A DNA stretch of 63,957 bases, counting the filler, from Choristocarpus tenellus KU-1152 (Eukaryota > Protista > Phaeophyceae), in assembly GCA_964200185.2 (NCBI GenBank). It is 11 parts of 11 records of this genome, joined end to end, with 100 filler letters (N's around TTAATTAATTAA, not from the genome) between each part and the next. Parts side by side here need not be neighbours in the genome. Positions count along the whole stretch, not along the records: positions 40,057 to 45,924 come from CAXNAD020009550.1; 10 more parts are not named here. One strand, 5' to 3'. The position numbers were made by a program, and so were the translations under genes. A model generated the notes under the pieces. It was not told the DNA's origin. It saw only the letters and a list, made by a program, of their open reading frames with translations, and ran no database searches. Shown one piece after another: positions 1-46,024 of the stretch. Position 1 is the stretch's first letter; each line of letters opens with the position of its first letter.

Positions 1-344
1 GTGTGAAATATTAGTGGAGTCTATCCATGGTGTGAACAAAGTCCCCTCCATTTGTTCTTGCTACCCCTGGCATGTCTCCTTTTGTCCTACATGCTAATAC
101 AGTGGGGGTAGTTTGTTCTTCCTTCCATCATTTTCGACAATCTCCCCCTCTGTCTACAATCTGTGCTCTACTTCTACACCATTGATCTACTAACTGGTCC
201 TCCCAATGTGAATCCGTTACTAGATTGATTCTTACTTCTTAGTCTGCTTTCTGCCCACCTCTCATCTTAATTCTACCTTTTAACTCCTTGTTAATCCTGC
301 AATATTTGTCCCTCCAATAATTCTTCTTTGTCACCAATGAATGC

Positions 345-727
345 ATGGGCGCATTGCAACAGGCCTCTCAGACTTGCCTATTGCCCCACATCATTCCACC
401 TTTTTCGTCTCTAGTGGACAGGTGGATTGTAAAGGAGCCCTTCAGACTGACACATTACCTACATCCTTTCACTTGTTAAATCATTATTAGACAGGACATT
501 GCAGTTGGCTTCTTTCTTTGTTCTCCCCTGGTGAACAGACACATTGCAAAACGAATTTCAGACTGGCGTATTGTCCACATCCTTTCATTTCCACGCCCCT
601 TAAAGATAGGCACACTGCAAATCGGTCTTTCAGATCGGTGCGTTATTCGCATCCATTCACTTTTATTCGCCCCTAGTGGACAGGGGCATTCCACAAACAC
701 CCTTCGGACTGACGAAATATCCACATC
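345..727. repeat. Degenerate tandem array of about 72-nt units (about 5 copies)
   Basis: Recurrent ttgca....ttcagact....attg.ccacatc and c.ctagtggacag motifs at about 355, 445, 545, 615 and 690. Confidence 0.6.
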
Positions 728-2316
728 TTTGCGCTTCCTGTAGCCATGGTGGACGCACAGTTTACATCAAACAGGCCTTTAACCTAACCAACCAACCCAA
801 CAATATTGCCCGTATCCCCCGTTTCTTATACTATCTTATATTTCATATGCATTAACCTTTGTGGGGTGAGAGGGCATTTTGTTTAATAATTCCTTTAGGC
901 TACTGCCGACTTTCTATTGTCAGAATGGGGACAGTGTAGGGAGGGATGATGCGATTGGGGAACTGGGGGGGACTGACCTGAGGGGGAAAGAAGAGGGGAA
1001 GCTTCTCCAGTTAGTAGGCTCCGTGCTCCAGTAGCCCTAGGAGGAAAAAGTAGTGGGGGTTATGTGTCTGGGTAAGCCCGTTGGCACACGAGGTGGAGAA
1101 TATCGGCCACTAAGTAGCCAGGCCCATGAGCAGCAAGGTGGAGGACATAGAGGAGGGCTGCGTGGTCTGTGCCCATGGAAGAAGAGGAAGAGCTAATTAG
1201 GTAGCAGTCACGGTCCTTCAGCTGTACCAGGAGGAGGAATAGCACAGGGGGGAGGGATGCCTGGGTAGAAGGGGTGAGGTATGCTATGGGGGATCTGCGC
1301 ATCCCTACGCGAAGTTTAATGATAAACCAAAATACATACATCTGTAGCTGTAGGATCTATGTCAAGGTTTGACTTAAAATTGTCCAACAGGGTTATTCAA
1401 ATTTGAAATAAAAGAATCACAGAAGGCCCCTGTCAGATAGTATCAAGACAAATCATAGTCTTAGCCAACCATGCACTCAATCATATTATCTAAACATCAT
1501 TGGAGTTCAAGTGGAAGGGAAAGGAAGTGGTTGTCCGACAACAGTTATACCCACCAATCGGTCTGTGTCGCCGGCAAGTACTCATAATTTCTTCCGTCAC
1601 AATCCTATAGTGTTGATTTCACGAGGTCACCCTTCACATGTACGTGTATGTACACGGTATGAGTTTTTCGTTACCTACAAGTGTGCTTGCGGGCGCTCGA
1701 GCAGCAGTTTTTTCTCGCACACGTCAACGACACAAGTACTATTTGGTGAGTGAATTGTTTGAATCCCTACTTTCTTACACATTATCGTGTGCTTAAACCC
1801 ACCCTGAAGGGTCCCCAGCATGCATAAGAACCACCATTATAGTTCTTTCGCACAGTGTAAGTGTATCCAAATGTAATATATATTCCCTTGAAAGATGAGG
1901 CACCGTTGCCACAAACAACATAACATGTTGAGGCGCATAGTTAAGGGAGGATATAGGTCGCCCTTGTAACAGAGACAATTGTTGTGTTCTTATCGATATT
2001 CCCAATAGTCTGGGAAAAAAAAAAAATCCCCACGTTGGGAGGAGCTAATAACATCAAACTTGGGAAAAGTGTGAAACAGGTGGAAACAAGCCGACAGGAT
2101 CTTCGAAAAGAAGGGGAGCGGGAAGACCCACAGGAGCACAGATCAAATAGAGACAAAGTCAAAGAGGGAGAGCAATCCCTCAGAAGATCTCTCCGGCAAA
2201 GAGTGAACAAGTGGAAAAGTGAAGGCGGGGGGATTTGAAAGGGCACTCCAAACCACCCAATCTTACTTCAAGCAGATGTTACCTTCAACATGCAAAAAAA
2301 AATGTCACATGAATAT

Positions 2317-2395
2317 CATGATGTTCAAGATAGGTCACCTTCAGGGTATACCTTATACATGATGTTCAAGATAGGTTACCTTCAGGGTATACCTT
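2317..2395. repeat. Tandem duplication of about 41 bp
   Basis: catgatgttcaagataggt.accttcagggtatacctt occurs twice. Confidence 0.85.
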
Positions 2396-3316
2396 CTGTG
2401 AAATATGGCTCTCACAAAAGGTGAATTTAAAACCGATAAATTATTCAGCGTCTACAAACAGATGGGTATCACCTCCTCCTTGGAGAATGGAAGTCCCTGT
2501 ACCATTAACCGCAATGTTCTGTATGGATTTGGTATTCCATGTGGAGGCATCCTCAAATTCAGTCTGCCCCTTACCAGGAAAAGGTTGACCTCTGGATGTG
2601 GCCTTTTCTAAGGTTCAAGCAGACTGCCACCTTCAACAATTCATCATCAAACAATGCTATCACTGCTGTTGCCGAGGCCCAGAAGTACACAACAGCAGAG
2701 CAATTTCTAAATGAGCTGGCGACTTATGTTGTGGGTGGTAGGGGGATGAAGGGCTTCAGTCAGAAGGGAGCTGTGAAGGCATGCCTGACACAGATTGTGC
2801 CAGTAACTGATCAAATTGTAATCTCTACATGTCTCATGGTGTTTCATACTGGAGACATCAGGTCAATGAGTTACAAAGAGGGGCTTGGCTGACTCATGAG
2901 ATTCTTCCCCTGATTCATGACCGCCTGCAGAATGTCAGTCTAGGAGTAGTTTCGGCTATGTGCTAGTTGTTTTATCAGCTAGCTATCACAGCTTCCTTAA
3001 CTGCTACACTTTATCGCGAAGTGCAAGAAGATATTGAAGAAGGTCGGAGCAAGAACACACTCCTGTCGAAGGGCGTATTCAACCTCGAAGGAGTCTGTGC
3101 ACTCGCCATCATCAGTGGGAACACATGGTCATATCTCATAATGGAATTGACGGGCGTGACACTGATCTTGTTCAGAGGTATGCCAAATTCGGCGAGCATG
3201 ACCCGCAAACATAGCCATTGACAAAGTCATTATTAAAACATAGGCTATTTATTTGCTTTTTTCTTGATACGATACAGTGGCACCAGTCCATATTGATTGT
3301 TGATTGGTCCGCTGTA

Positions 3317-3364
3317 GGCTCAAAGTATCTGGGGGGGGGGGGGGGGCGGGGCAGATGGAGGGAG
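3317..3364 (+). mobile_element. MITE family A left terminus at contig end
   Basis: ggctcaaagtatct followed by poly-G, then the spacer. Confidence 0.7.
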
Positions 3365-3464
3365 NNNNNNNNNNNNNNNNNNNNNNNNNNNNNNNNNNNN
3401 NNNNNNNNTTAATTAATTAANNNNNNNNNNNNNNNNNNNNNNNNNNNNNNNNNNNNNNNNNNNN
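3365..3464. other. Artificial contig spacer (N44-TTAATTAATTAA-N44); identical spacers at 7917-8016, 33749-33848, 36920-37019, 39957-40056, 45925-46024, 48881-48980, 53444-53543, 58329-58428, 61352-61451
   Basis: Ten identical 100-nt blocks. The palindromic 12-mer places a stop codon in all six frames. Confidence 0.98.
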
Positions 3465-4182
3465 AGCATACCTGACGACATGTGCATCAGGAGTCCTATA
3501 CGTACATCAGTATCATCTATTGGCCCGTAGATTGGAGCTATACATCCTGTGGAGGTAAGCTTTGAGGGGCGCCTGTAACATTGGTCCTTGCCATACAGTT
3601 TTGGTTTCGTTTTTTTCCCTCCCCTCGCACATCATGAAGAACGTCATGGAGGGATAATATAAATATATTTTGATACCTTCCTTTGAGGGAGGAGATCCCA
3701 GGTCTGTACTCGAAAACGAGATAGTGAATAATATAATTGGGGATTGAGATACGTACAAGATGGTGGAATACATTTTGTAATGTGAAATATGAGGTCCATG
3801 TAACGAAGTCTCCGTTACTTTCTGACATGAAGGGGAAGGTTGTTAAGTTGTATGAAAGGCATGAAATGGTCTATACTACGAAAACTTGAAATAAAAAATA
3901 AAAATAGGAATTACTAAAAAGAAAATATATATAGAATGACGTAAAGTGTCATTAGCTCATAACTGAAGAAATAAGATTTTGATTTCTAATATAGAATCCC
4001 ATTCATTAGTTCCATCAATGATCGGGGATTACCTGTGTTCTAGTCAAACGGTGTAGTGCCCATGGACTCAATCTTGGTTATGTGGGGTAGAATATGGAAA
4101 CTTGGTTTGTCCTACCTACAGCAGTTAAAATTTTAGGTGTAGACTGAGCTTTCAGTAAATCTTGACAACTGTACACCGCGGG

Positions 4183-7156
4183 ATGAACAGTGAAGATCTG
4201 GAGATATCATGGAAGCCTGGCACAATATGCTTGGCAGTATTGTGCTCGGTGGTTTCAGCCTATTCCGCCGTGTCCATCCTCGACAATGCCAGGTAATACA
4301 AAATATTGGTGCAAACAATCTCGTTCTTCTCAAAACTAGAGTTGAATGTAGCCTCTTCATGAAGTGAGATTCGCCAACTCCTGCTCGTGAGACTACGAAT
4401 GTGATTAAGTCCCAGGTCGAAATGCAAGTGACTCTCATAGTATTGGTGAGAATTTCGGATGGTGTGCACGGCAGTCTAGACTAAACTAATTCCATTATAT
4501 TGCGACGGCAAGGTGGACAGCTCGCAAGCATGAGAGCCATACTGTGATCTACCTTCGTAAGACCAACTCAGCTGCTGCAGTTGTCTTGGGTTGTGGAGGG
4601 GTCTGGAGCATGCATCAGGTTGGCAACATGGCCTTCGTCCTGGAGGACGTTGATATCGAAACCAATGTCCTCCTAACGCTCTTGTCGATATTGGCTATCG
4701 TGGCCTTCACTCACAAAGCTTTCTCCATCGCTGGGGCCGATGTGTTTGCTGGGTCTGATCGACTGGAGGTAGGGAACTCTGTGTTGTACGAAGGGCAATT
4801 GTTTTGTTTCAGTACCAAAACACAAATCCAGGTAGAGAAGGTGTGAGAGGTGAAAATTGCATGTGCAGTAAAGGCACCCGTATTTATGGCGAACAGGAAT
4901 AGCAGCAAGTAGAAGAGACGTTTCCTCTATGTCGCCGAGTACTGATGCTATCTTTCCTTATCATACGCATCTCGTTACTATTCCATCTCGTTTCCTGCTG
5001 GACAAACAGGTACTCCGTTCAATACTCCTAGACAAGTACACCCTCCATGAACTCAAGTTGCAACCTACGATAGGAAGTCGGGTTGCTTTCTTCTGGAGGC
5101 TTCAACACATCTGTTTGGCTGCAGTGGTAATGGCTGTCGGTGTGGCGACCATGCACTTTGCAGGCATGTTCGCACTTAACGGAGCATTCCATGTAAGGTG
5201 ATGCTAAGCTAGGCGTTGCCTCAACCTACAACATATCATTGATTACCCCCTAAATCAAATTGTAGATATATCCTTGTTGTGTGTAGTTCAAGTAGATCTC
5301 TTCACAGTACATCTGCCTTTTCCTTCTAATAGGTTTGCGGCAGGGAGATGCCCACCTGACTCATGCTACGCCTACAAGTGCCTCGATATATTTCCTTCAT
5401 ATTGCAAGAAGCTTGTGATTTGGTTCAAAGTATCTGGGGGGCGTGGCGGCTGTCCATTTGGGGTCAATTTTTTCATGTCGCAATTTTCGGGTGATTTGGT
5501 TGCATACGTTGAATGGATAATGTGAGTGCACTTTTCTTGGTTTGGGCCAAATGGATACCCTGGTGTAGACCGCCCGCCCCCCCGAGATACTTTGGGTCAT
5601 TATCATCACTGGGGCATAGATTTCCAGGGTGGTTCCAGAAGAATGACCACATATCAAGGGCACCTTAAACAACATTGATTTAGAAGGGAAATATGTTCCT
5701 TGAATCAGAGGTCTTCGGTAAATGCTGAGCTTAGTATTTTGATGTGATTTCCTCGGGCTAAGTTACAGAATGAACACACTTCACCCTTTGCACTAGCTCT
5801 ACCGAGGTCATAGAATGTTCTCTCTTCTGGTTTCGAGTTTTTCAGGAACTATGGTATTTTATTGGTAAGAACAAAGTCGATTGTTCTGACTCAAAGAATG
5901 ACAAGAAATAGATGTTTTGATAAATATATCATATTCAGTGTCCCTCATTATAGCACAAACTATCCAAAACTGCTTGCTCAAGCTTGGACAGAAATCTGTG
6001 GGCATCTTTTCCGGACAGATTATTTTAGTTCTAGGCCAACCTAGTCTGTAGTACTTTCACAAAACTCTTATTTGAAATACACAAGTTCACTACCCATACC
6101 ACCCTCATATCACACAATATCTGCCCATTACTGAATCACCTGCTTGGAAGGTTGTCTATCTGGCGAGTTTTCCTAGTGGTTGTCGCAGCAATCATAGTGT
6201 GCTTTGTGGGCCTGTGGATCCTCTTCCGCCTACTGCTTTGGAGACCTACCAAGGAGATATATCGTCCAGTGGCTGGATTGATCATAGGGATGGCAGTTTG
6301 CTGTGTACACTTTTTTGGCATGCACTCTGCCACTTACACAAGAAAAGGCACGGATGAATCACCATTGCCGCTAGGTTCCATATCAGTCAAACTGACCAAG
6401 GGGGAATACCTGCCTTTCATTATTTTTTTCGTCATGTCACTAGCTCTCCTTACTCATGCTGGAATCGCAACCCAGGTGAGCATATAATATATTTACTTCC
6501 CAATCACAAGGTTGAAGTCGTGATGTGGTTTTGCCTTTGTGCAACAATCATCCACATCCCCCTCATCCTCTTATGTTGTACATCATTTTCTTTTCTATTA
6601 ATTATATTATGCTACTCCAGTACTACATTATTCTGCATTACGAGACTCTCCATCCTCCCCACTTCTGTTTCTCCTCTATGTGCACAAATAATGCTCTTTC
6701 CATCTCAGCTCAGAAAGGCTTACAGGAAACTTGAGGATACAAAGCTGGGGATAAACATATTCAGCGATCGCCTGTTCAATGGCAGGTCAGAGTGGTGCTT
6801 CTCTTGTGAACAGGCAGTAGTTCCCACACCAATGAAGGCTTAATGTATGAAGTACTTCTAAAGATTTCTCATTATCAACTAGTCATAACCACATTTGAGG
6901 GAACAGGGTGTACACTGAAGACTTTCAACAAACCCTACTTTCTTATGCCTTCTGCTACATCCCCTCTTGGGCGTTCTTATCTTCTAGTTCTGCAATATCC
7001 TCTTCGGAATCTGCTTTACGGCGTCAACAGCAGCAAGATACTTCGGATGTAGTATCACTGCAAGAGAGCAAGGATGGGATGCACGAACCGATACACAAAA
7101 TGGGAATAAGGTGTAACAAAATTATTGCTCAGCCTGATGAACAAGGCGATATATAG
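4183..7156 (+). CDS. MHYT-domain integral membrane sensor protein, no recognisable output domain. Exons 4183-4292, 4513-4768, 5010-5197, 6151-6475, 6709-6785, 6907-7156
   Basis: Phase-compatible GT-AG splicing gives MNSEDLEISWKPGTICLAVLCSVVSAYSAVSILD, then three MHYT-type repeats (GGVWSMHQVGNMAF; VGVATMHFAGMFAL; MAVCCVHFFGMHSATY) separated by hydrophobic helices. The last two exons are less certain. Confidence 0.85.
5422..5598 (+). mobile_element. MITE family A, full copy in intron 3 of the MHYT gene
   Basis: TIRs ggttcaaagtatctgggggg ... cccccgagatactttgggtc; the internal sequence is homologous to 45220-45453 and 58429-58567. Confidence 0.85.
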
Positions 7157-8339
7157 AGTCAGTGTGAATGAGAGGTACCTAGAGTTGCAGTTTAAGGATC
7201 TTAACAGTTATGTGCAAAATTTGAGTTTTTTTCAAAGTGTGTAAGATTTTTTTCTGAATTTTGTTTTGGAGTTTCAAACACAACAGAGAAATCAACACTC
7301 TCAAGTCAAACTGAGCACTTCATCTAGAGAAATTATGGATGAATATAAAAACAAATCCTCAAAAATGCAAAACCTGGGTACCCCTCGTTTACTTTGGCTC
7401 ATGGTTTGTTGGATCAACTGGAGACCTCGCACGTTGTATATTGAAATAGAAACTGTTGCTGAGTGGCATTACTGAGGAGGGCTCCTTGAGAAACCTTGGG
7501 TTACCCTCTTGCCATTTAGGTGAAACGTACACTCCACTGTGGTGGTGAACCTGTTCTTCTCTGAGAACTGGGATTGGGACAGTTCTGTATCAAGGTTGTG
7601 ATTGTCAAGTAGTATTAACTGTGTACAGTGATATCGTGTTGTTCATTCTCAATGGTTTTGTTGTTGTTATGGCCATATTTTGCAAGATGTTGGGTTTAAA
7701 ATTAGGTTTAAGGTAGTGGTTGGGTTGGTTTGGGTGGCATAGGGTACATTAGCTGAATGGCTGACTGGTTGACTAACTCCAAAGTGATTCCACTGCTGTA
7801 CGGTAGGGTAGGATGCCTGTACTGGGTGGCTGCCTACTTACTGGCCGACTACCTGGTTGACTCTCCGTGGGTGAAGTCCCAACGCTGACATCTCTGTGAG
7901 CGTGTGCTACACCCATNNNNNNNNNNNNNNNNNNNNNNNNNNNNNNNNNNNNNNNNNNNNTTAATTAATTAANNNNNNNNNNNNNNNNNNNNNNNNNNNN
8001 NNNNNNNNNNNNNNNNGTAGCTAACGTGCATGCTTCATGATCAGGGGGGGGGGGATGAGGAGGGTGGGCGGTGTTTTTCGAAGGCTGTGATCAAGGTGTT
8101 GCTCTTGTGGTTGTGCTTGGGCATTCAAATCGGAGACAGGGCCTTGCCAAATATATTTTCATTTTTAAACTAGATACATCAATAATACAATATGCCAGTT
8201 TTCACAGTATTGTATACTCAATCAAACTTAGCTCATTTTCAGAAAAATTGAAGAAAATTACCCTGCCATTGTATTTCACTTAGACAAGGAGTATAGCAGG
8301 CATGGAGTTTGGTCCATGAGAAAAAATTGGCACTAGATT

Positions 8340-40056: not shown

Positions 40057-40088
40057 CAGCCGCTACCCCCTCCCAGATACTTTGAGCC
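40057..40088 (-). mobile_element. MITE family A terminus at contig start
   Basis: cagccgctaccccctcccagatactttgagcc. Confidence 0.7.
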
Positions 40089-43082
40089 ACCGCCATTATT
40101 CCTCTTTCCCTCCCTCCCCCACCCCCACCCCCACTCCCCCCTTTTTGAGCTAAATAGAGCAATGTAGCATATTAGTACATATATCCCCTCCTCAATCTAA
40201 ACACATCCATTTCCAACCCCTGGTTCAACTCGAAACTATTGCAGACGTTTGTGGCATACAACTATAACCATATGCATATATCCATCTCATTACCCACACT
40301 ATTCTATCCTGAATCCCCTCCCACTTTGATTGTCTTGAACTGATTATCCCGCTATTGGGCACCATCCAATGCGCTCCTGCTATCACTTTCTTTGACTGTG
40401 GTCACTGGTTGTTAATGCTCGTAGCAAAGATGGCAAAGTACACTCCCGAAAACCGTAATACATTATAGCCCCATTTTTTACTTTCTTGTCAACCATCCAA
40501 CCTACCACCCTATAATATAACCTACTATGATAAATTTCACCTTTAAGACAAAGGGGTATCCAAGCTTGCTTGCAAGCAAAGTGGCGTAAGAGGTATGACC
40601 AATCATTCCTCCCCCCCCCCTTTGATTGGCATGCACTAATTATCCTGCTTTTTTTTTTACAATACGATTTCTCGCACAGTCAATTTCTTTTACTGTCGCC
40701 CATTGCTGTTAATGCATGTTTCACAGAAGAGAAAGCCTACTGCTCATCCCTTTTTGCTCTTATCCCGAATTCCTCATTTTCGTGGCATTCACTCCACCTA
40801 CCATTCCACCCTACCAAGTGCCCTCATCTAGTACTCCGGAATATCTATACGGGTTTGTTCTTGTTTTTCCTCTACTAATGAAAAGTTCTAACTCAGCTTG
40901 TTGCTAAAGCTACAGAAAGACTATGAATAATCTTATTGACAGAACACTTTATTCAAAGAGTGTCTTTCACAACATAGTCACCTCTATATCATTCTATGAT
41001 GACCCTCATTGTTTGATTTTGTCTCAAATGACTTGGGGCGAACAATATTGGCAGCAGGAACAACGTACTCATTCTATCACTGATCGATATAGACCTGATA
41101 TCTGCCCCAGCTCTAAATCTCATGCGACATATAACTGGTAATCGCTCTAGAATTGGTCTCACACCTAAACGGCCCACTCTATGACTCGTCCCCGTGTACC
41201 CCTTTGACTACAATTCCGGTAGAGAGAACTTATTTCACCACCCATGTCGCAGTGCCATCATACACCAAGACCACCATCATCTCCATACCTCGTAGACTTC
41301 TTCATACCATTTTTATCTGGTTCTCATTCATCGCCACCTTTACTACCAGGCATTCCCCTTTCTCCACAGTAATAAAAAAATTCTCAGAGGTTGCTTTCTT
41401 CTCGTCCTGCCTGACCTGCCCCCATCAACCTCAGATTTATCCTTTGTTCTGTCTCATCCCTTCCGACCTCGTGCTTCCAACCCTACCACTCACTTCTTTA
41501 ACTTCTCTCCTACCTCTTCTGCCTTTTAGTCACCTAGTACTCAACTCTTCGTCCACCGTCTCTTTATTTTTCTTTTACCCCTATCAACACTCCGGTCCCC
41601 ATACATCATCCCTCACACAGAATTCTCCCCCCCACAAAACTCAGATTACTTCATACACTTCCACTTTCGTCCCTTCTTCCCCATTCGATCATAAAATTCC
41701 CTTCTAGGTACACTACAACAATAGAATTGTACAGATGTACTGGGACAATGTAGTTATCTTCAAACGTGTTAAAATGCCATCAGAGCGCGCGCTCGCATAC
41801 ATTACAGCATTAGACTGGTCCTCATTTCAACAATATTTGCACCAGTAACAAACAAAGAACACCATGCATCAGATGATAATAATTTTGTTCCCCTCTCACA
41901 GAACATGATGATCAGAAAATCAATTTCTAGAAAATAGTATTGTGGTTTTCAATTATCGACTCTATATTCAAAAGATCCTCCGTTAGATTTACAATCCGTT
42001 GTTACATGGAACAGCATCATGGAAACCACATGTTGTGAGAAGAAGTGTGGCGTCTAACAGGTTCCAACTGGGTAGAACTGTGGGGGTGTTGATGGGTAGT
42101 CGCCGACTTAAATCACTGATCCACAAGAATACTACAGAAGATAGTACGAGACCACAATCCTCGCCGCATCATGAGGTTGATAATATATAGTATTATGCCG
42201 TTTCACATTTTGGAGATGCGGCAGGAGAAAAGTCAGTTCAATATTATAAGAACCCCTTTAACAGTCACAGTTGTCGTAAATGTGAAAGACATCTCTCCAA
42301 AATCTACTACTTGACTACCAGCTACGCTACACCACTCCCCCGCTATGCCTCCGACCTAGCTTACCCCTACACCACAGTGTGAGGAGCTAGTGAAGCATCC
42401 CAAGAATCTGACAGGCCCCTCCTTCCCCATCCCCAGAATGTCTCTAGGCTAAAACGCGCGACACGCCTTGATAGAGCCACTTGCATTGTCATAAATCCAT
42501 AACAGATCTGTGTATAAGAAGTAAGGGTAATGTAGAAGGGGTCCACAGTCACCTCAACTATCAAGGCCAGAGGACATTGTTAGGAAATTGACGCATTATT
42601 GGTCAAGATTTGGACCTTTATAGGAGAACAAGTTTTAAACTTGGAAGGTTTTCAGAACCCAGATCTGAGAAACGAGATTATCTCTATTCTCCAAAAAAAA
42701 CTGGATTCAACGAAATCATTTGATTGCCTCTATCAACACAGATAGCCCGAGTAAAGTGAGGGCAACAAATATATTAAAATATTTATCTACGAAAAATGAT
42801 TAGCCATCATTGAGATTCCTCAACCTTAGAATGGAGCCTGTTAAAGAGAACTTTTAACATACCACAAAAGAGTAACCCTTACAGCAACAAATATTTCCAC
42901 GGAGATATCAAGATTTTGAACCACATTATTGCGGTCAAACACACCAGTATGTTATCCCCACAGAACAACTTCTCAATTGCTGGAGGTATCTAGTTTCCTT
43001 ATAGGGGAAATGTTTAAATTGTCCTCTTTTGTTATCTTGTTGCCACCTCAAATTACCCCCACTCATAACAAACTGTAAGATC

Positions 43083-45896
43083 ATGATGGACGTGGAGAGG
43101 AGTGCTGGTGCTGCCAGAAGTCGATCGGAAGCACGTGAGCAGTGCTTCTGGTGGGTTGGGAAGCTCCTATTCATGATCATCGCTTGCGCAGCGTGCATCA
43201 CACTGTATCTCGTTGGCACTTTCACGAGCTTCAACTCCGGCATGTTCTACGTTACGGGCTGTAAGTGTTGCTTTGTGTAGACTGACGAAAATATTGAGTA
43301 TCCCTTGCCCAAAACCATGAGAGTATAATGCAAACAAGAAAGGACTGAGCGAGAGTGAGGTCTATCATTCATGACCTCTCAGCTTCCTCGTCTGTATGGC
43401 ACTTCATGCCTGTCAATCATACGTGGGTTATCGGTTTGGTTATCCTGGCAATGACGAAAGAATCTGCTGATTAAAAGTTTGGGAAGGAATGATATACCAC
43501 ACATGACTGCTTTATATATACATCTCTGTCCACCAATAACAATGTCGAAACAAGAACCAAATGCCCAAGAAGGAGTCAGCGACCCGTACCGATCTATATG
43601 TACGTCGCTGTGGCAACCATGTGAAAAGCAACATACCCTCAAACTGTAGTAACAGGCTAATAATTTGGACAAAAACCATACCTAAATATCATATAATGGC
43701 TCAACCCGAGCTCAGCTCATTCCTACCAGCGCAATAAAGTCACACGTATCTGTTACCACGTAGAGTGAAAGTACCTTAGAGGGTACGAGTTTTGCCCTGT
43801 TTGTCCATTTAGGGCTTGACTTCTCACGAGATTTTTAATGACATTTTCCTACGCCAACATATTTTCTGAGTAGATAAAATGTGTATGTTATGAAATAATG
43901 CGCCCGGAACATGTGTATTGACACTTCCTGACAAACACGATAGCCAAAATTACATCTAATTCGCAACATTGGATTTGACACCCAAATGGACGCGGCTCTA
44001 CCGTCTAAGATATTTTGGCTCCTTATTTCCTTCGCCCAGAAGTAGTTGTGCAAGAAGCGTATCTACGACTGAGGTCCCTCAGAACTACCCCCTTTACCAC
44101 TCCAACCTTAAACTCCTTCGTTGATGATACTGCCAAAGAGCTGTCTGACTTCATAGTGTTCATCCTACCTGTCATCTCGACTGCCCGTCCGTCCATCCGC
44201 TGGGGAAGATGGGATCATGTCAGTATCATACTATGTTTTTACCTCTGTATTAGCCTACTTGAACCGTCTCAGGGTGGATAGACTATCCAAGTATGGTGGT
44301 GAGGTCAGCAAGGAGGATCCATGGAAGCCATCGGTTACAGTCCATGTTGTGGGATACAAAGAGGATCCAGTGTACTTCCTTAACTGTCTCCTCTCAGTCA
44401 AAGACCTCCAGTATTCCAACATTGGTGCCATCATCTTGGTGATAGACGGCAATGAGGATGACGATTGGTACATGGTGGACATTGCGAATCAGGTATTTGG
44501 CACAGAGGCACAAAGTATTCGTCTTGAGGACAATCCCCGACTGACTGAGGTGGGATATGAACAGTTGCTTGCCCAGCTGGTAAGCACTCCATCTGGCGAT
44601 CCAACCACACAGGTAAAGAGCAATTCTAGGAGGATGTAGTACAAACACCAGGGTGGGTTGGGTCACAGATAGATAGCCCCTAGCACTTACCTATTTATAT
44701 TTTGCTTGATGTGAGTATCAACACTCGTTGTGGACCTGATTGACTCAAGCGATCCACCAAACCCAAGCACTCACTCATCCACTGGTCTTTACCATGGGCC
44801 AAAGCATTGAATTTGAGTTAATTCAACCCTAATAGTGTGAAGAGGTGCAACGGGTTGCTGGCGCAGACTGGAGGATGTTATGCGGGAGAGCCAGCTCCTA
44901 AGATTGTTGTGTGACTATATTCTGATGGACAGAGGCAACCTAAATTGGTCCTCTAAACCTATTGCCATACAGGTCTATATCATTGCACAGCCGCACCAGG
45001 GTAAGCGGGAGGCCTTATATACAGCCTACAAGATTTCTCAGTTTGTGGGAACCGAGTTCTTCTTGAACACCGATTCCGACACTGTCCTACACCCTCATTG
45101 CTTGGATGAAATGATGGTGGTTACGAGAGACCACCCAGAAATTGCCGGTGTTGCTGGCATGCTCACAATCTTTAACGTTAGCAACTGGCTGTCCCTCCTG
45201 TCTGCATCAAGGTCAGTCAGGCTCAAAGTATCTGGGGGGTGGGGGGTGGCAGCTGTCCATTCGGGACCCATTTTTCCATGTCGCGATTTTTGGGTGGTTT
45301 GGTTGCATGCGTCAGATGGATAATGTAAGTGCACTTCTCCTGGTTAGGGCCCCAATGGACACCCTGGAGTAGACCCCCCCCCCCCACGGATACTCTGCCC
45401 CAAAAGCCCCCCCGGGGTCTGCCCCCCCCCCCCCCCCACGGATACTTTGAGCCTCGAATTTGGTTTACTGCAAATATGATATGAATGGTGTATTGTGTGA
45501 ATTTTGTGCATAATATATGAAGATCCTGAAAGTCCTTCTTGCAATAGGTGAAATATTTAGCACTCCGGAGTGGTTGTAGTAGTCATGTTCGGTTGCGATG
45601 TATACTGGTGTCAGTCCATATTTTCTGCCATGTGATTGAACTTGAGGTAGCGACGTCGCCTCTGTGTGTGCAATCTCTTGTGTTTGACTGTACTTTGGCA
45701 AAGTCAAACAAGTAAGAATTGACACTGCACAAGTGTGAGTATGACAATACTCTCAATGCGGCTGTCACTGCCAACACCCATTGATTGTACGTTTCATTGG
45801 AATTCTCAGGTACTTTATGGCCTTTCATGTTGAGCGAGCTGCTCAAAGCTTCAGTGGTGTGGTTGGATGCATCTCAGGCCCCCTTGGTCTCTACAG
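43083..45896 (+). CDS. HAS: Class I hyaluronan synthase-like GT2 glycosyltransferase, spliced, 3' truncated by contig end. Exons 43083-43260, 44209-44579 (alt. donor 44612), 44973-45211, 45810-45896
   Basis: Exons splice in frame at GT-AG sites: two N-terminal TM helices with the YG motif built across intron 1; [40 protein letters not shown]; [12 protein letters not shown]; NTDSDT (DxD); WLSLLSASR|[29 protein letters not shown]. These follow, in order, the HAS motifs Y[QR]EDP, VIDG, GKRE, DSDT and RY..AF..ER..QS....V.C..GPLG.Y[RK]. The GDD and QxxRW exons lie beyond the contig end. Confidence 0.9.
43763..44021 (-). mobile_element. MITE family B in intron 1 of the HAS-like gene
   Basis: gagtgaaagtaccttagagggta ... 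taccgtctaagatattttggctc; flanks cgta/ctta; reverse-complement homology to 33404-33659. Confidence 0.85.
45220..45453 (+). mobile_element. MITE family A, full copy in intron 3 of the HAS-like gene
   Basis: TIRs ggctcaaagtatctggggg ... ccccacggatactttgagcc, with an internally duplicated right end; starts 8 nt after the splice donor. Confidence 0.85.
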
Positions 45897-46024
45897 GCAA
45901 GTCACGAGTCACATGTGGGGGGGGNNNNNNNNNNNNNNNNNNNNNNNNNNNNNNNNNNNNNNNNNNNNTTAATTAATTAANNNNNNNNNNNNNNNNNNNN
46001 NNNNNNNNNNNNNNNNNNNNNNNN

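Follow-up and report, generated by a model that had tools for sequence, protein, structure and literature searches.

A hyaluronan synthase-family gene with introns in the brown alga Choristocarpus tenellus and its phaeovirus-linked relatives

Gene organization

The window considered here is a stretch of 63,957 nucleotides, filler included, which joins 11 parts of the genome assembly of the brown alga Choristocarpus tenellus KU-1152 (GCA_964200185.2), and all positions of the locus count along it. The piece that was analysed, positions 40057-45924 (5,868 bp, ~43-44% guanine plus cytosine, GC), comes from contig CAXNAD020009550.1 and carries the 5' half of a gene for a putative class I hyaluronan synthase (HAS). 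Within positions 43083-45896, four exons, in frame and free of stops, cover the first ~300 residues of a class I HAS-family glycosyltransferase 2 (GT2) enzyme (Table 1). In all searches each exon was handled separately, and in the alignments and trees the exons formed separate rows.

An earlier reading of this DNA (hereafter the original prediction) had placed a HAS-type gene in four in-frame, stop-free exons. This is borne out by the exon translations, which hold all the motifs then quoted, by tblastn with full-length relatives as queries, which recovered the four exons in the order found in those proteins, and by the PDB matches to HAS described below. One border of the exon model had to be changed, namely the acceptor of exon 2, which homology places at 44208/44209; this restores the conserved ...TG-Y-G-I-M-S... 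of all relatives, whereas with a later in-frame AG, at 44222-44223, five conserved residues would be lost.

The region of exon 1 gave tblastn matches at 43098-43271 (queries P0005, P0131 and P0132), and an in-frame stop is located upstream of 43029, 5' of the exon. A hydrophobic 19-mer in exon 1 constitutes transmembrane helix 1 (TM1), with a Kyte-Doolittle maximum of 2.36, while TM2 is divided by intron 1, the junction of exons 1 and 2 aligning with the conserved TM2 of the relatives. Exons 1 and 2 thus place two transmembrane helices N-terminal to the GT-A domain, the arrangement expected for class I HAS.

Introns 1-3 have GT-AG borders and compatible phases, contain 6-18 stops in each frame and have a lower GC content than the exons. 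At the end of exon 2 we noticed two in-frame donors 33 nucleotides apart, GTAAGC at 44580 (44579/44580) and GTAAAG at 44613, and alternative splicing in the variable linker could result from this pair. The end of exon 4 at 45896 is putative, being placed by the consensus of a GC donor, and the contig stops 28 nucleotides later in poly-G; nucleotide similarity to the relative on metagenome contig L014 ends exactly at 45897. A possible intron of P0007/P0254 located after GPLGMYK was considered as a match to the putative fourth intron and dropped, since a canonical donor is not compatible with the residues read through. The contig ends within the gene, so that the piece lacks GDD, QxxRW and the membrane channel.

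Table 1. Features of the analysed piece (positions along the window; a slash in a splice site marks the exon/intron border)
Feature	Position	Strand	Description
Exon 1	43083-43260	+	Start ATG, cytosolic N-terminus, TM1 and first part of TM2; ends in phase 1, donor T/GTAAGT
Intron 1	43261-44208	+	948 nucleotides, GT..AG, phase 1; 14-18 stops per frame
Exon 2	44209-44612	+	Rest of TM2, first part of GT-A domain and variable linker; donor CAG/GTAAAG, phase 0
Intron 2	44613-44972	+	360 nucleotides, GTAAAG..ACAG, phase 0; acceptor directly 5' of V in VYIIAQPH
Exon 3	44973-45211	+	QPHQGKRE (His174/Lys177 equivalents), DSD (DxD motif), AGMLTIFN; donor AAG/GTCAGT, phase 2
Intron 3	45212-45809	+	598 nucleotides, GTCAGT..CTCAG, phase 2
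Exon 4 (minimum extent)	45810-45896	+	Includes switch loop; consensus GC donor CAG/GCAAGT at 45897
Contig tail	45897-45924	+	Either start of intron 4 or read-through; weak similarity to relatives; ends in 8 G (45917-45924)
Element in intron 3, like a miniature inverted-repeat transposable element (MITE)	45219-45454		31-nucleotide terminal inverted repeats (87% complementary), internal poly-G and poly-C, degenerate extra arm at 45381-45401
Lone terminal repeat, same MITE-like family	40066-40088	-	Left contig edge; contig starts inside a repeat copy

Family assignment

In phmmer searches of the PDB, exon 2 matched residues 55-142 of the HAS of chlorovirus PBCV-1 (Cv-HAS; A98R; PDB 7SP6 and others) at 2.5e-12 and Xenopus HAS1 at 7.8e-9, its other match being one DARPin (E = 0.65). 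Exon 3 matched Cv-HAS residues 171-244 at 6.7e-8, and exon 4 matched residues 301-330 of Xenopus HAS1 at 2.1e-7 and residues 249-277 of Cv-HAS at 3.4e-4. The chlorovirus and Xenopus synthases are the sole meaningful PDB matches of exons 2, 3 and 4, collinear over Cv-HAS residues 55-277 and, judged by these E-values, far beyond chance.

In Cv-HAS the uridine diphosphate (UDP)-sugar is bound by Tyr91, His174, Lys177, Asp201/Asp203 and the switch loop 266-271, and Lys177 and Arg341 recognise the carboxylate (PMC12987647). The residues of the UDP/uracil pocket, Tyr91, His174 and Lys177, are conserved in the window gene (GYKEDP and QPHQGKRE, as compared with GYREDP and QPHRGKRE of Cv-HAS), as is the metal-binding DxD motif, the DSD of exon 3 being aligned with that of Cv-HAS (Asp201, Asp203). 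The C-x-x-G-P of the switch loop is kept in exon 4 (GCISGP, versus SCISGP in Xenopus HAS1 and QCVGGP in Cv-HAS). Of 69 alignment columns without variation among 22 homologues, 63 are retained, and the annotated genes of the brown alga Sphacelaria score equally; two of the six lost columns are artefacts of the misaligned tail of exon 2, and the others are conservative (F/L, V/I, A/G, N/H).

Neither the short exons nor the full-length relatives reach the score of a chitin synthase or NodC family. Pfam gave GT2 and Chitin_synth_2 below threshold only (Chitin_synth_2 at 12.9 and 11.5 bits, against a 27-bit cut-off), and the NCBIfam model of NodC gave 20 bits with the window exons and 145-166 bits with the relatives, against a cut-off of 550 bits. 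Grouping with chitin synthase or NodC, together with a product of chitin oligomers only, had been named among the outcomes that would speak against the original prediction; as to the grouping, the comparison came out for the HAS family. By the residues it encodes, the gene is assigned to the class I HAS family and not to chitin synthases or NodC.

Relatives and their genomic context

An exhaustive HMMER search with exon 2 retrieved 128 representatives, the best at 48-51% identity. The exon 2 product had no exact match in the assembly index, and a word-index search with exon 2 (134 residues), limited by its length filter, gave no match either. One homologue cluster contains a 476-residue protein of Sphacelaria rigidula. 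Family membership was taken from word-index searches of 5.8 billion proteins with the Sphacelaria protein and P0252 as queries; these found three Sphacelaria proteins, ~20 proteins of 466-582 residues (mostly ~490-520) from ENA, Logan and JGI contigs with ~47-55% identity to the queries, and four fragments of ~320 residues. The family also includes vertebrate HAS2/3 and lancelet genes (34-38%) and members from early-diverging fungi. S. rigidula is the only named cellular member of the clade described below (45-47% identity). Further non-vertebrate proteins of the HAS family, at ~35-38% identity, were seen in an annelid genome (P0010, Owenia fusiformis) and in a marine protist transcriptome (P0306, MMETSP0321).

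The closest relative of the window gene is P0252, an uninterrupted open reading frame (ORF) of 514 residues present on five short contigs, whose identity to exons 2, 3 and 4 is 41%, 66% and 61%, respectively. GDDRHLTN, QQTRWSKSFWRE and WGTSSRK are retained in P0252, and its AlphaFold model (pLDDT 88, pTM 0.89) matches the folds of Xenopus HAS1 (8smn, TM-score 0.84) and Cv-HAS (7sp8, 0.80), as compared with at most 0.51 for chitin synthases and at most 0.56 for cellulose synthases. The viral full-length protein P0005 matches Xenopus HAS1 at 5e-91 (309 bits) and no PDB chitin synthase at E<=1e-3. GDDR is present in the aligned full-length clade members and in P0252, and the QQTRWSKS form of QxxRW is invariant in the full-length relatives.

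Nearest relatives were found in giant-virus contexts on L004, L006, L007, L009 and L011. L006 is a 61-kb metagenomic giant-virus contig on which the gene has a Pox_A32 packaging ATPase, PCNA, a hybrid histidine kinase and ankyrin proteins as neighbours, and on L004/L005 the intronless gene is accompanied by a protelomerase-type ResT/TelK protein, SET and a C48 peptidase. In the next lineages outward, the neighbours are an intein-bearing ribonucleotide reductase and an EsV_1_7_cys protein on L009, a 548-kb contig, and DHFR-TS and EsV_1_7_cys on L011. A scan of IMG/VR with a single protein gave no match, and with an alignment of full-length members it gave one distant locus at 37% identity, which was of no help with the viral taxonomy.

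In S. rigidula, P0153 is intronless and lies in a gene-dense, viral-type stretch with DUF7197 and PCNA neighbours as in L006, while P0132 and P0134 have three introns each and are the sole genes on their contigs. The metagenome contigs L014 and L015 likewise carry nothing but the gene, with exactly one GT-AG intron each.

Some observations were made along these contigs. DUF7197 and PCNA near an intronless HAS-like gene are common to L007 (CAXNAA020001611.1, Sphacelaria rigidula; 2218-7303) and L006 (10001-20790), which suggests that a virus of this lineage is either inserted in the Sphacelaria genome or was co-assembled with it. Genes for a glycerophosphodiester phosphodiesterase (GDPD) and for EsV_1_7_cys recur near the HAS-like gene on distant virus-type contigs (L002 3833-4486, L009 9535-11655 and L011 3136-4359), and may form a conserved gene neighbourhood with it. 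On L009 (12237-16157) it is the large subunit of ribonucleotide reductase that is interrupted by the intein, which has a LAGLIDADG domain.

Intron positions

Intron 2 of the window gene has the same place and phase (0) as the single introns of L014 (1151-1266) and L015 (2092-2618), before the V of VY(I/V)(I/V)xQPH. Intron 1, a phase 1 intron within the Tyr codon that follows ...TG, is located one codon 3' of intron 1 of both intron-bearing S. rigidula genes (phase 1, Gly codon), the other two introns of which follow THRAT and QQTR in the part beyond the window contig. Of the loci examined, only the window gene has intron 3, L001, L008, L014 and L015 being uninterrupted there. All 20 members of the viral core defined below lack introns, as compared with three GT-AG introns in the window gene.

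Since intron positions are shared across loci, we regard the interruptions as real inherited spliceosomal introns and not as random disruptions. Introns of spliceosomal type, two of them with counterparts in other genomes, mark the locus as a resident eukaryotic gene and not as a bacterial or free-virus contaminant, and in this respect the original prediction was right.

Phylogenetic analysis

Trees of 64 and 37 rows were calculated, in which exons 2 and 3 of the window formed separate rows and Cv-HAS had no row; they are unrooted within the clade of interest. Both window rows are placed inside a clade with the Sphacelaria and intronless genes, with a support of 100 (SH-like approximate likelihood ratio test, SH-aLRT) and of 100/100 (bootstrap/SH-aLRT). 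This fully supported clade, apart from the vertebrate and fungal HAS-like groups, is nested in a wider one (support 99-100) in which the other sampled lineages are virus-borne; the vertebrate genes, with those of lancelets, and the fungal HAS-like genes lie outside the wider clade.

When fragments were added, 20 intronless genes formed a core with a support of 98, and the interrupted copies all fell outside it: both window rows, P0154/P0007, L014, L015, P0156, P0009, and Sphacelaria A and B. The exon 3 row of the window groups with P0154/P0007 (support 90), and in the best tree the 12 interrupted rows make up one side of a branch, with weak support (SH-aLRT 72). The interrupted copies stand beside, not inside, the intronless core. 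For the window it is clade membership alone that is firm, because its rows are short and long-branched. One member of the interrupted group, P0009 (Logan contig, 4270 bp), has GERE for GKRE, with loss of the Lys177 equivalent, and IYGD for IDGN, and is probably a decayed copy.

The original prediction had also set the gene apart from viral contamination. Independence from viruses is not supported: intronless genes in giant-virus contexts belong to the same clade, and the next outer lineages are virus-borne too. By this placement the gene is tied to phaeovirus-like viruses rather than independent of them.

Interpretation of the locus

We favour, with a probability of about 0.7, the reading that the piece contains the 5' half of a nuclear, intron-bearing class I HAS-family GT2 gene, belonging to a clade common to phaeovirus-like viruses and a few eukaryotes, and that its product would make a polymer that contains N-acetylglucosamine (GlcNAc), with hyaluronan as the best guess. 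The locus would probably be a synthase gene with links to viruses that has become resident in an algal genome. Phaeovirus-like viruses and algal hosts would have exchanged the gene, probably in the direction from virus to host, which is favoured because the outer lineages are virus-borne, and intron gain in the host and retention under constraint would have followed. The enzyme would be membrane-integrated and processive, with a membrane-anchored GT-A domain of HAS type in which the UDP-sugar, together with Mn2+/Mg2+, may be bound through the Tyr, His, Lys and DxD residues; the missing half would supply GDD, QxxRW and the channel, as in each full-length relative, and a GlcNAc-containing polysaccharide would be polymerised and extruded.

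Several points weigh against this reading. In the 3 kb upstream of the gene we detected, by Pfam and ORF searches, no neighbouring viral or host gene, so that neither the context of an endogenous viral element (EVE) nor that of a host gene is seen there. The GC content of the piece is ~43-44%, as compared with 48-51% in the Sphacelaria contigs, and commonly cited values for brown algae are also higher. The acceptor of intron 1 is not preceded by a pyrimidine tract, and the contig ends before GDD and QxxRW, with the channel helices and the catalytic half outside the piece. The branches of the window rows are long (0.7-1.1), which could mean relaxed constraint, and the base of the clade is a polytomy, because of which the trees do not settle the direction of transfer. 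The gene is read from genome sequence, and its expression is presumed. Finally, relatives of HAS can make chitin oligomers, and the product may differ from hyaluronan.

Among the closest known systems is Cv-HAS, which also belongs to a virus of algae. It has the same class I architecture and is the best PDB match of exons 2 and 3, and GY(K/R)EDP, IDG(N/D)E, QPH.GKRE, DSDT and GPLG align mostly without gaps; in addition, the clade of the window gene is likewise borne by giant viruses. Nevertheless, identity is only ~30% in the fold-search alignments of P0252, Cv-HAS appears to belong to a different clade, though it had no row in the trees, and the window gene is interrupted by spliceosomal introns, its surroundings are non-viral and gene-poor, and its product is proposed by analogy. 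Vertebrate HAS1-3 (Xenopus HAS1, PDB 8SMM/8SMN) provide the best match of exon 4, with an identical CISGP switch loop, and the GDDRH.TN and QQTRWSKS forms of the full-length relatives are the same as in Xenopus HAS1; however, identity is 34-38%, and in the trees the vertebrate HAS, together with those of lancelets, are set apart in a well-supported group of their own. The HAS-like genes of early-diverging fungi (Anaeromyces, Basidiobolus, Bifiguratus), at 32-38% identity, are likewise non-vertebrate eukaryotic members, but they form a separate group in the trees, and their products are mostly putative. By likeness to the two nearest characterised enzymes, hyaluronan would be the best single guess for the product.

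A functional gene with another product, i.e. chitin, a chito-oligosaccharide or a different GlcNAc-containing polymer, as made by NodC and by chitin-making chloroviruses, is the alternative that survives best, although we consider it rather unlikely. NodC and chitin synthases are also processive GT2 enzymes that use UDP-GlcNAc, the NodC model is the best prokaryote-oriented one for the relatives (1e-42 to 1e-48), and the weak matches to Chitin_synth_2 point in the same direction. Moreover, no residue of the window is known to be exclusive to the use of glucuronic acid (GlcA), Lys177 and Arg341 being general UDP-binding and QxxRW residues, and we did not find hyaluronan from brown algae reported in the literature searched. 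Nonetheless, the likeness to HAS is far above that to chitin synthases, both in bits (309, for P0005 to Xenopus HAS1) and in fold, the NodC scores of the relatives are far under the cut-off of that family, the relatives carry QQTRWSKS as do residues 338-345 of Cv-HAS, and Xenopus HAS1 has the same CISGP switch loop as the window gene. Taken together, these features argue for a HAS-type gene that is not a member of the NodC or chitin synthase families.

Resident giant-virus genes, some with introns and some expressed, are described in the genome of the brown alga Porterinema fluviatile, where endogenised phaeovirus genes gained introns, and in brown algae the majority of EVE genes are transcriptionally silent (PMC11890097). 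The window gene might be a silent, decaying relic of an old giant-virus insertion, broken by later insertions, in which the apparent introns are mere interruptions. The silence of most such genes, the long branches of the window rows, the truncated and repeat-rich contig with a MITE-like element inside intron 3, and the degenerate motifs of the related fragment P0009 would all fit such a relic. We regard it as unlikely, given that the three interruptions have canonical GT..AG ends and compatible phases and cost no residues relative to the homologues, that ~300 codons are free of stops and frameshifts, that the substitutions in the invariant columns are few and conservative, and that intron 2 is common to two loci, L014 and L015, whose genes are otherwise intact. 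The window gene and the Porterinema genes have in common that genes of giant-virus type, in part with introns, reside in a brown-algal genome; in contrast to Porterinema, the piece shows no flanking viral genes and several loci have introns at common positions, features that suggest an older and more fully host-adapted gene. No HAS-like or chitin synthase-like gene is mentioned in that work (0 occurrences; PMC11890097).

The weakest alternative, built on the extracellular-matrix pathway proposed in the original prediction, is an ancestral brown-algal HAS pathway unrelated to viruses and part of the normal extracellular matrix, which the introns, the apparent constraint, the two annotated intron-bearing homologues of a brown alga and the position of the interrupted copies beside the viral core in the best tree would accommodate, but which we hold to be quite improbable, as the only named brown-algal homologues among the 5.8 billion proteins come from Sphacelaria, so that the gene is patchy and not a general feature of brown algae, as the clade is shared with giant-virus genes, with the next two lineages outward virus-borne, and as Sphacelaria also has an intronless copy inside viral-type DNA.

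We return to the favoured reading, a virus-linked HAS-family gene resident in the alga, and to its significance. The HAS family and its fold, as well as virus-borne HAS in chloroviruses, are known already, and class I hyaluronan synthesis is established for vertebrates, streptococci, chloroviruses and, by report, Cryptococcus. To our knowledge, the matrices of brown algae have been described without hyaluronan. The intron-bearing HAS members in an alga and the phaeovirus-like viral HAS clade are apparently undescribed, since the literature searched yielded no paper on this clade or on HAS-like genes of phaeoviruses or brown algae. Half a gene in itself, the piece is of value as a pointer to a coherent HAS-family clade in which genes of phaeovirus-like giant viruses stand together with intron-bearing ones from at least one brown alga and from several eukaryotes. 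Because intron positions are partly shared between loci, this clade offers a clean case for intron gain after gene exchange between virus and host.

In a bolder and doubtful extension, some brown algae, or related hosts of phaeovirus-like giant viruses, would have domesticated a virus-linked class I HAS and would make hyaluronan or a close GlcNAc/GlcA polymer, with the viral copies remodelling the host surface during infection as chloroviruses do. If true, a pathway to a glycosaminoglycan would exist beyond animals, fungi, bacteria and chlorovirus-infected cells. The clade also raises the questions of whether phaeovirus-like viruses coat their hosts with a hyaluronan-like polymer, and whether algae have kept the enzyme for their own matrix.

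Repeats and flanking sequence

The terminal repeat pattern of the MITE-like element occurs four times in the piece, as compared with zero expected. The original prediction had mentioned two MITE families of the host within the introns; one MITE-like family is indeed present, inside intron 3, whereas a second could not be verified, no other MITE family being recognised within 40057-45924. The repeat is absent from all fetched loci, those of Sphacelaria included. We also considered whether intron 3 as a whole could be an introner-type transposon and rejected this, as the element covers 236 of the 598 nucleotides and no target-site duplication is evident. A further candidate for a match to the repeat, L013 (Ga0075467_10023313), obtained in a scan of JGI metagenomes, was attributed to chance: the match of 21 nucleotides lies inside a retroelement-like ORF and no further similarity was observed. 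The analysed contig itself is absent from this metagenome collection. At positions 46-3767, L013 contains ORFs of 862 and 365 residues that resemble a retroelement with a tyrosine-recombinase-like protein and are unrelated to the HAS-like gene.

No tRNA, Rfam or Pfam signal was detected in the 3 kb upstream of the gene, nor in scans of the intronic ORFs. At the left side of the piece (40057-41850), ~1.8 kb of the plus strand are strongly pyrimidine-rich (C/T), with a GC skew down to -0.64 and an array of the hexamer CCCACC at 40112-40138. Both contig ends lie in repeats, with 8 G at 45917-45924 on the right and the MITE terminal repeat within 40057-40088 on the left; the assembly probably broke at these repeats, and the terminal poly-G could be a sequencing artefact.

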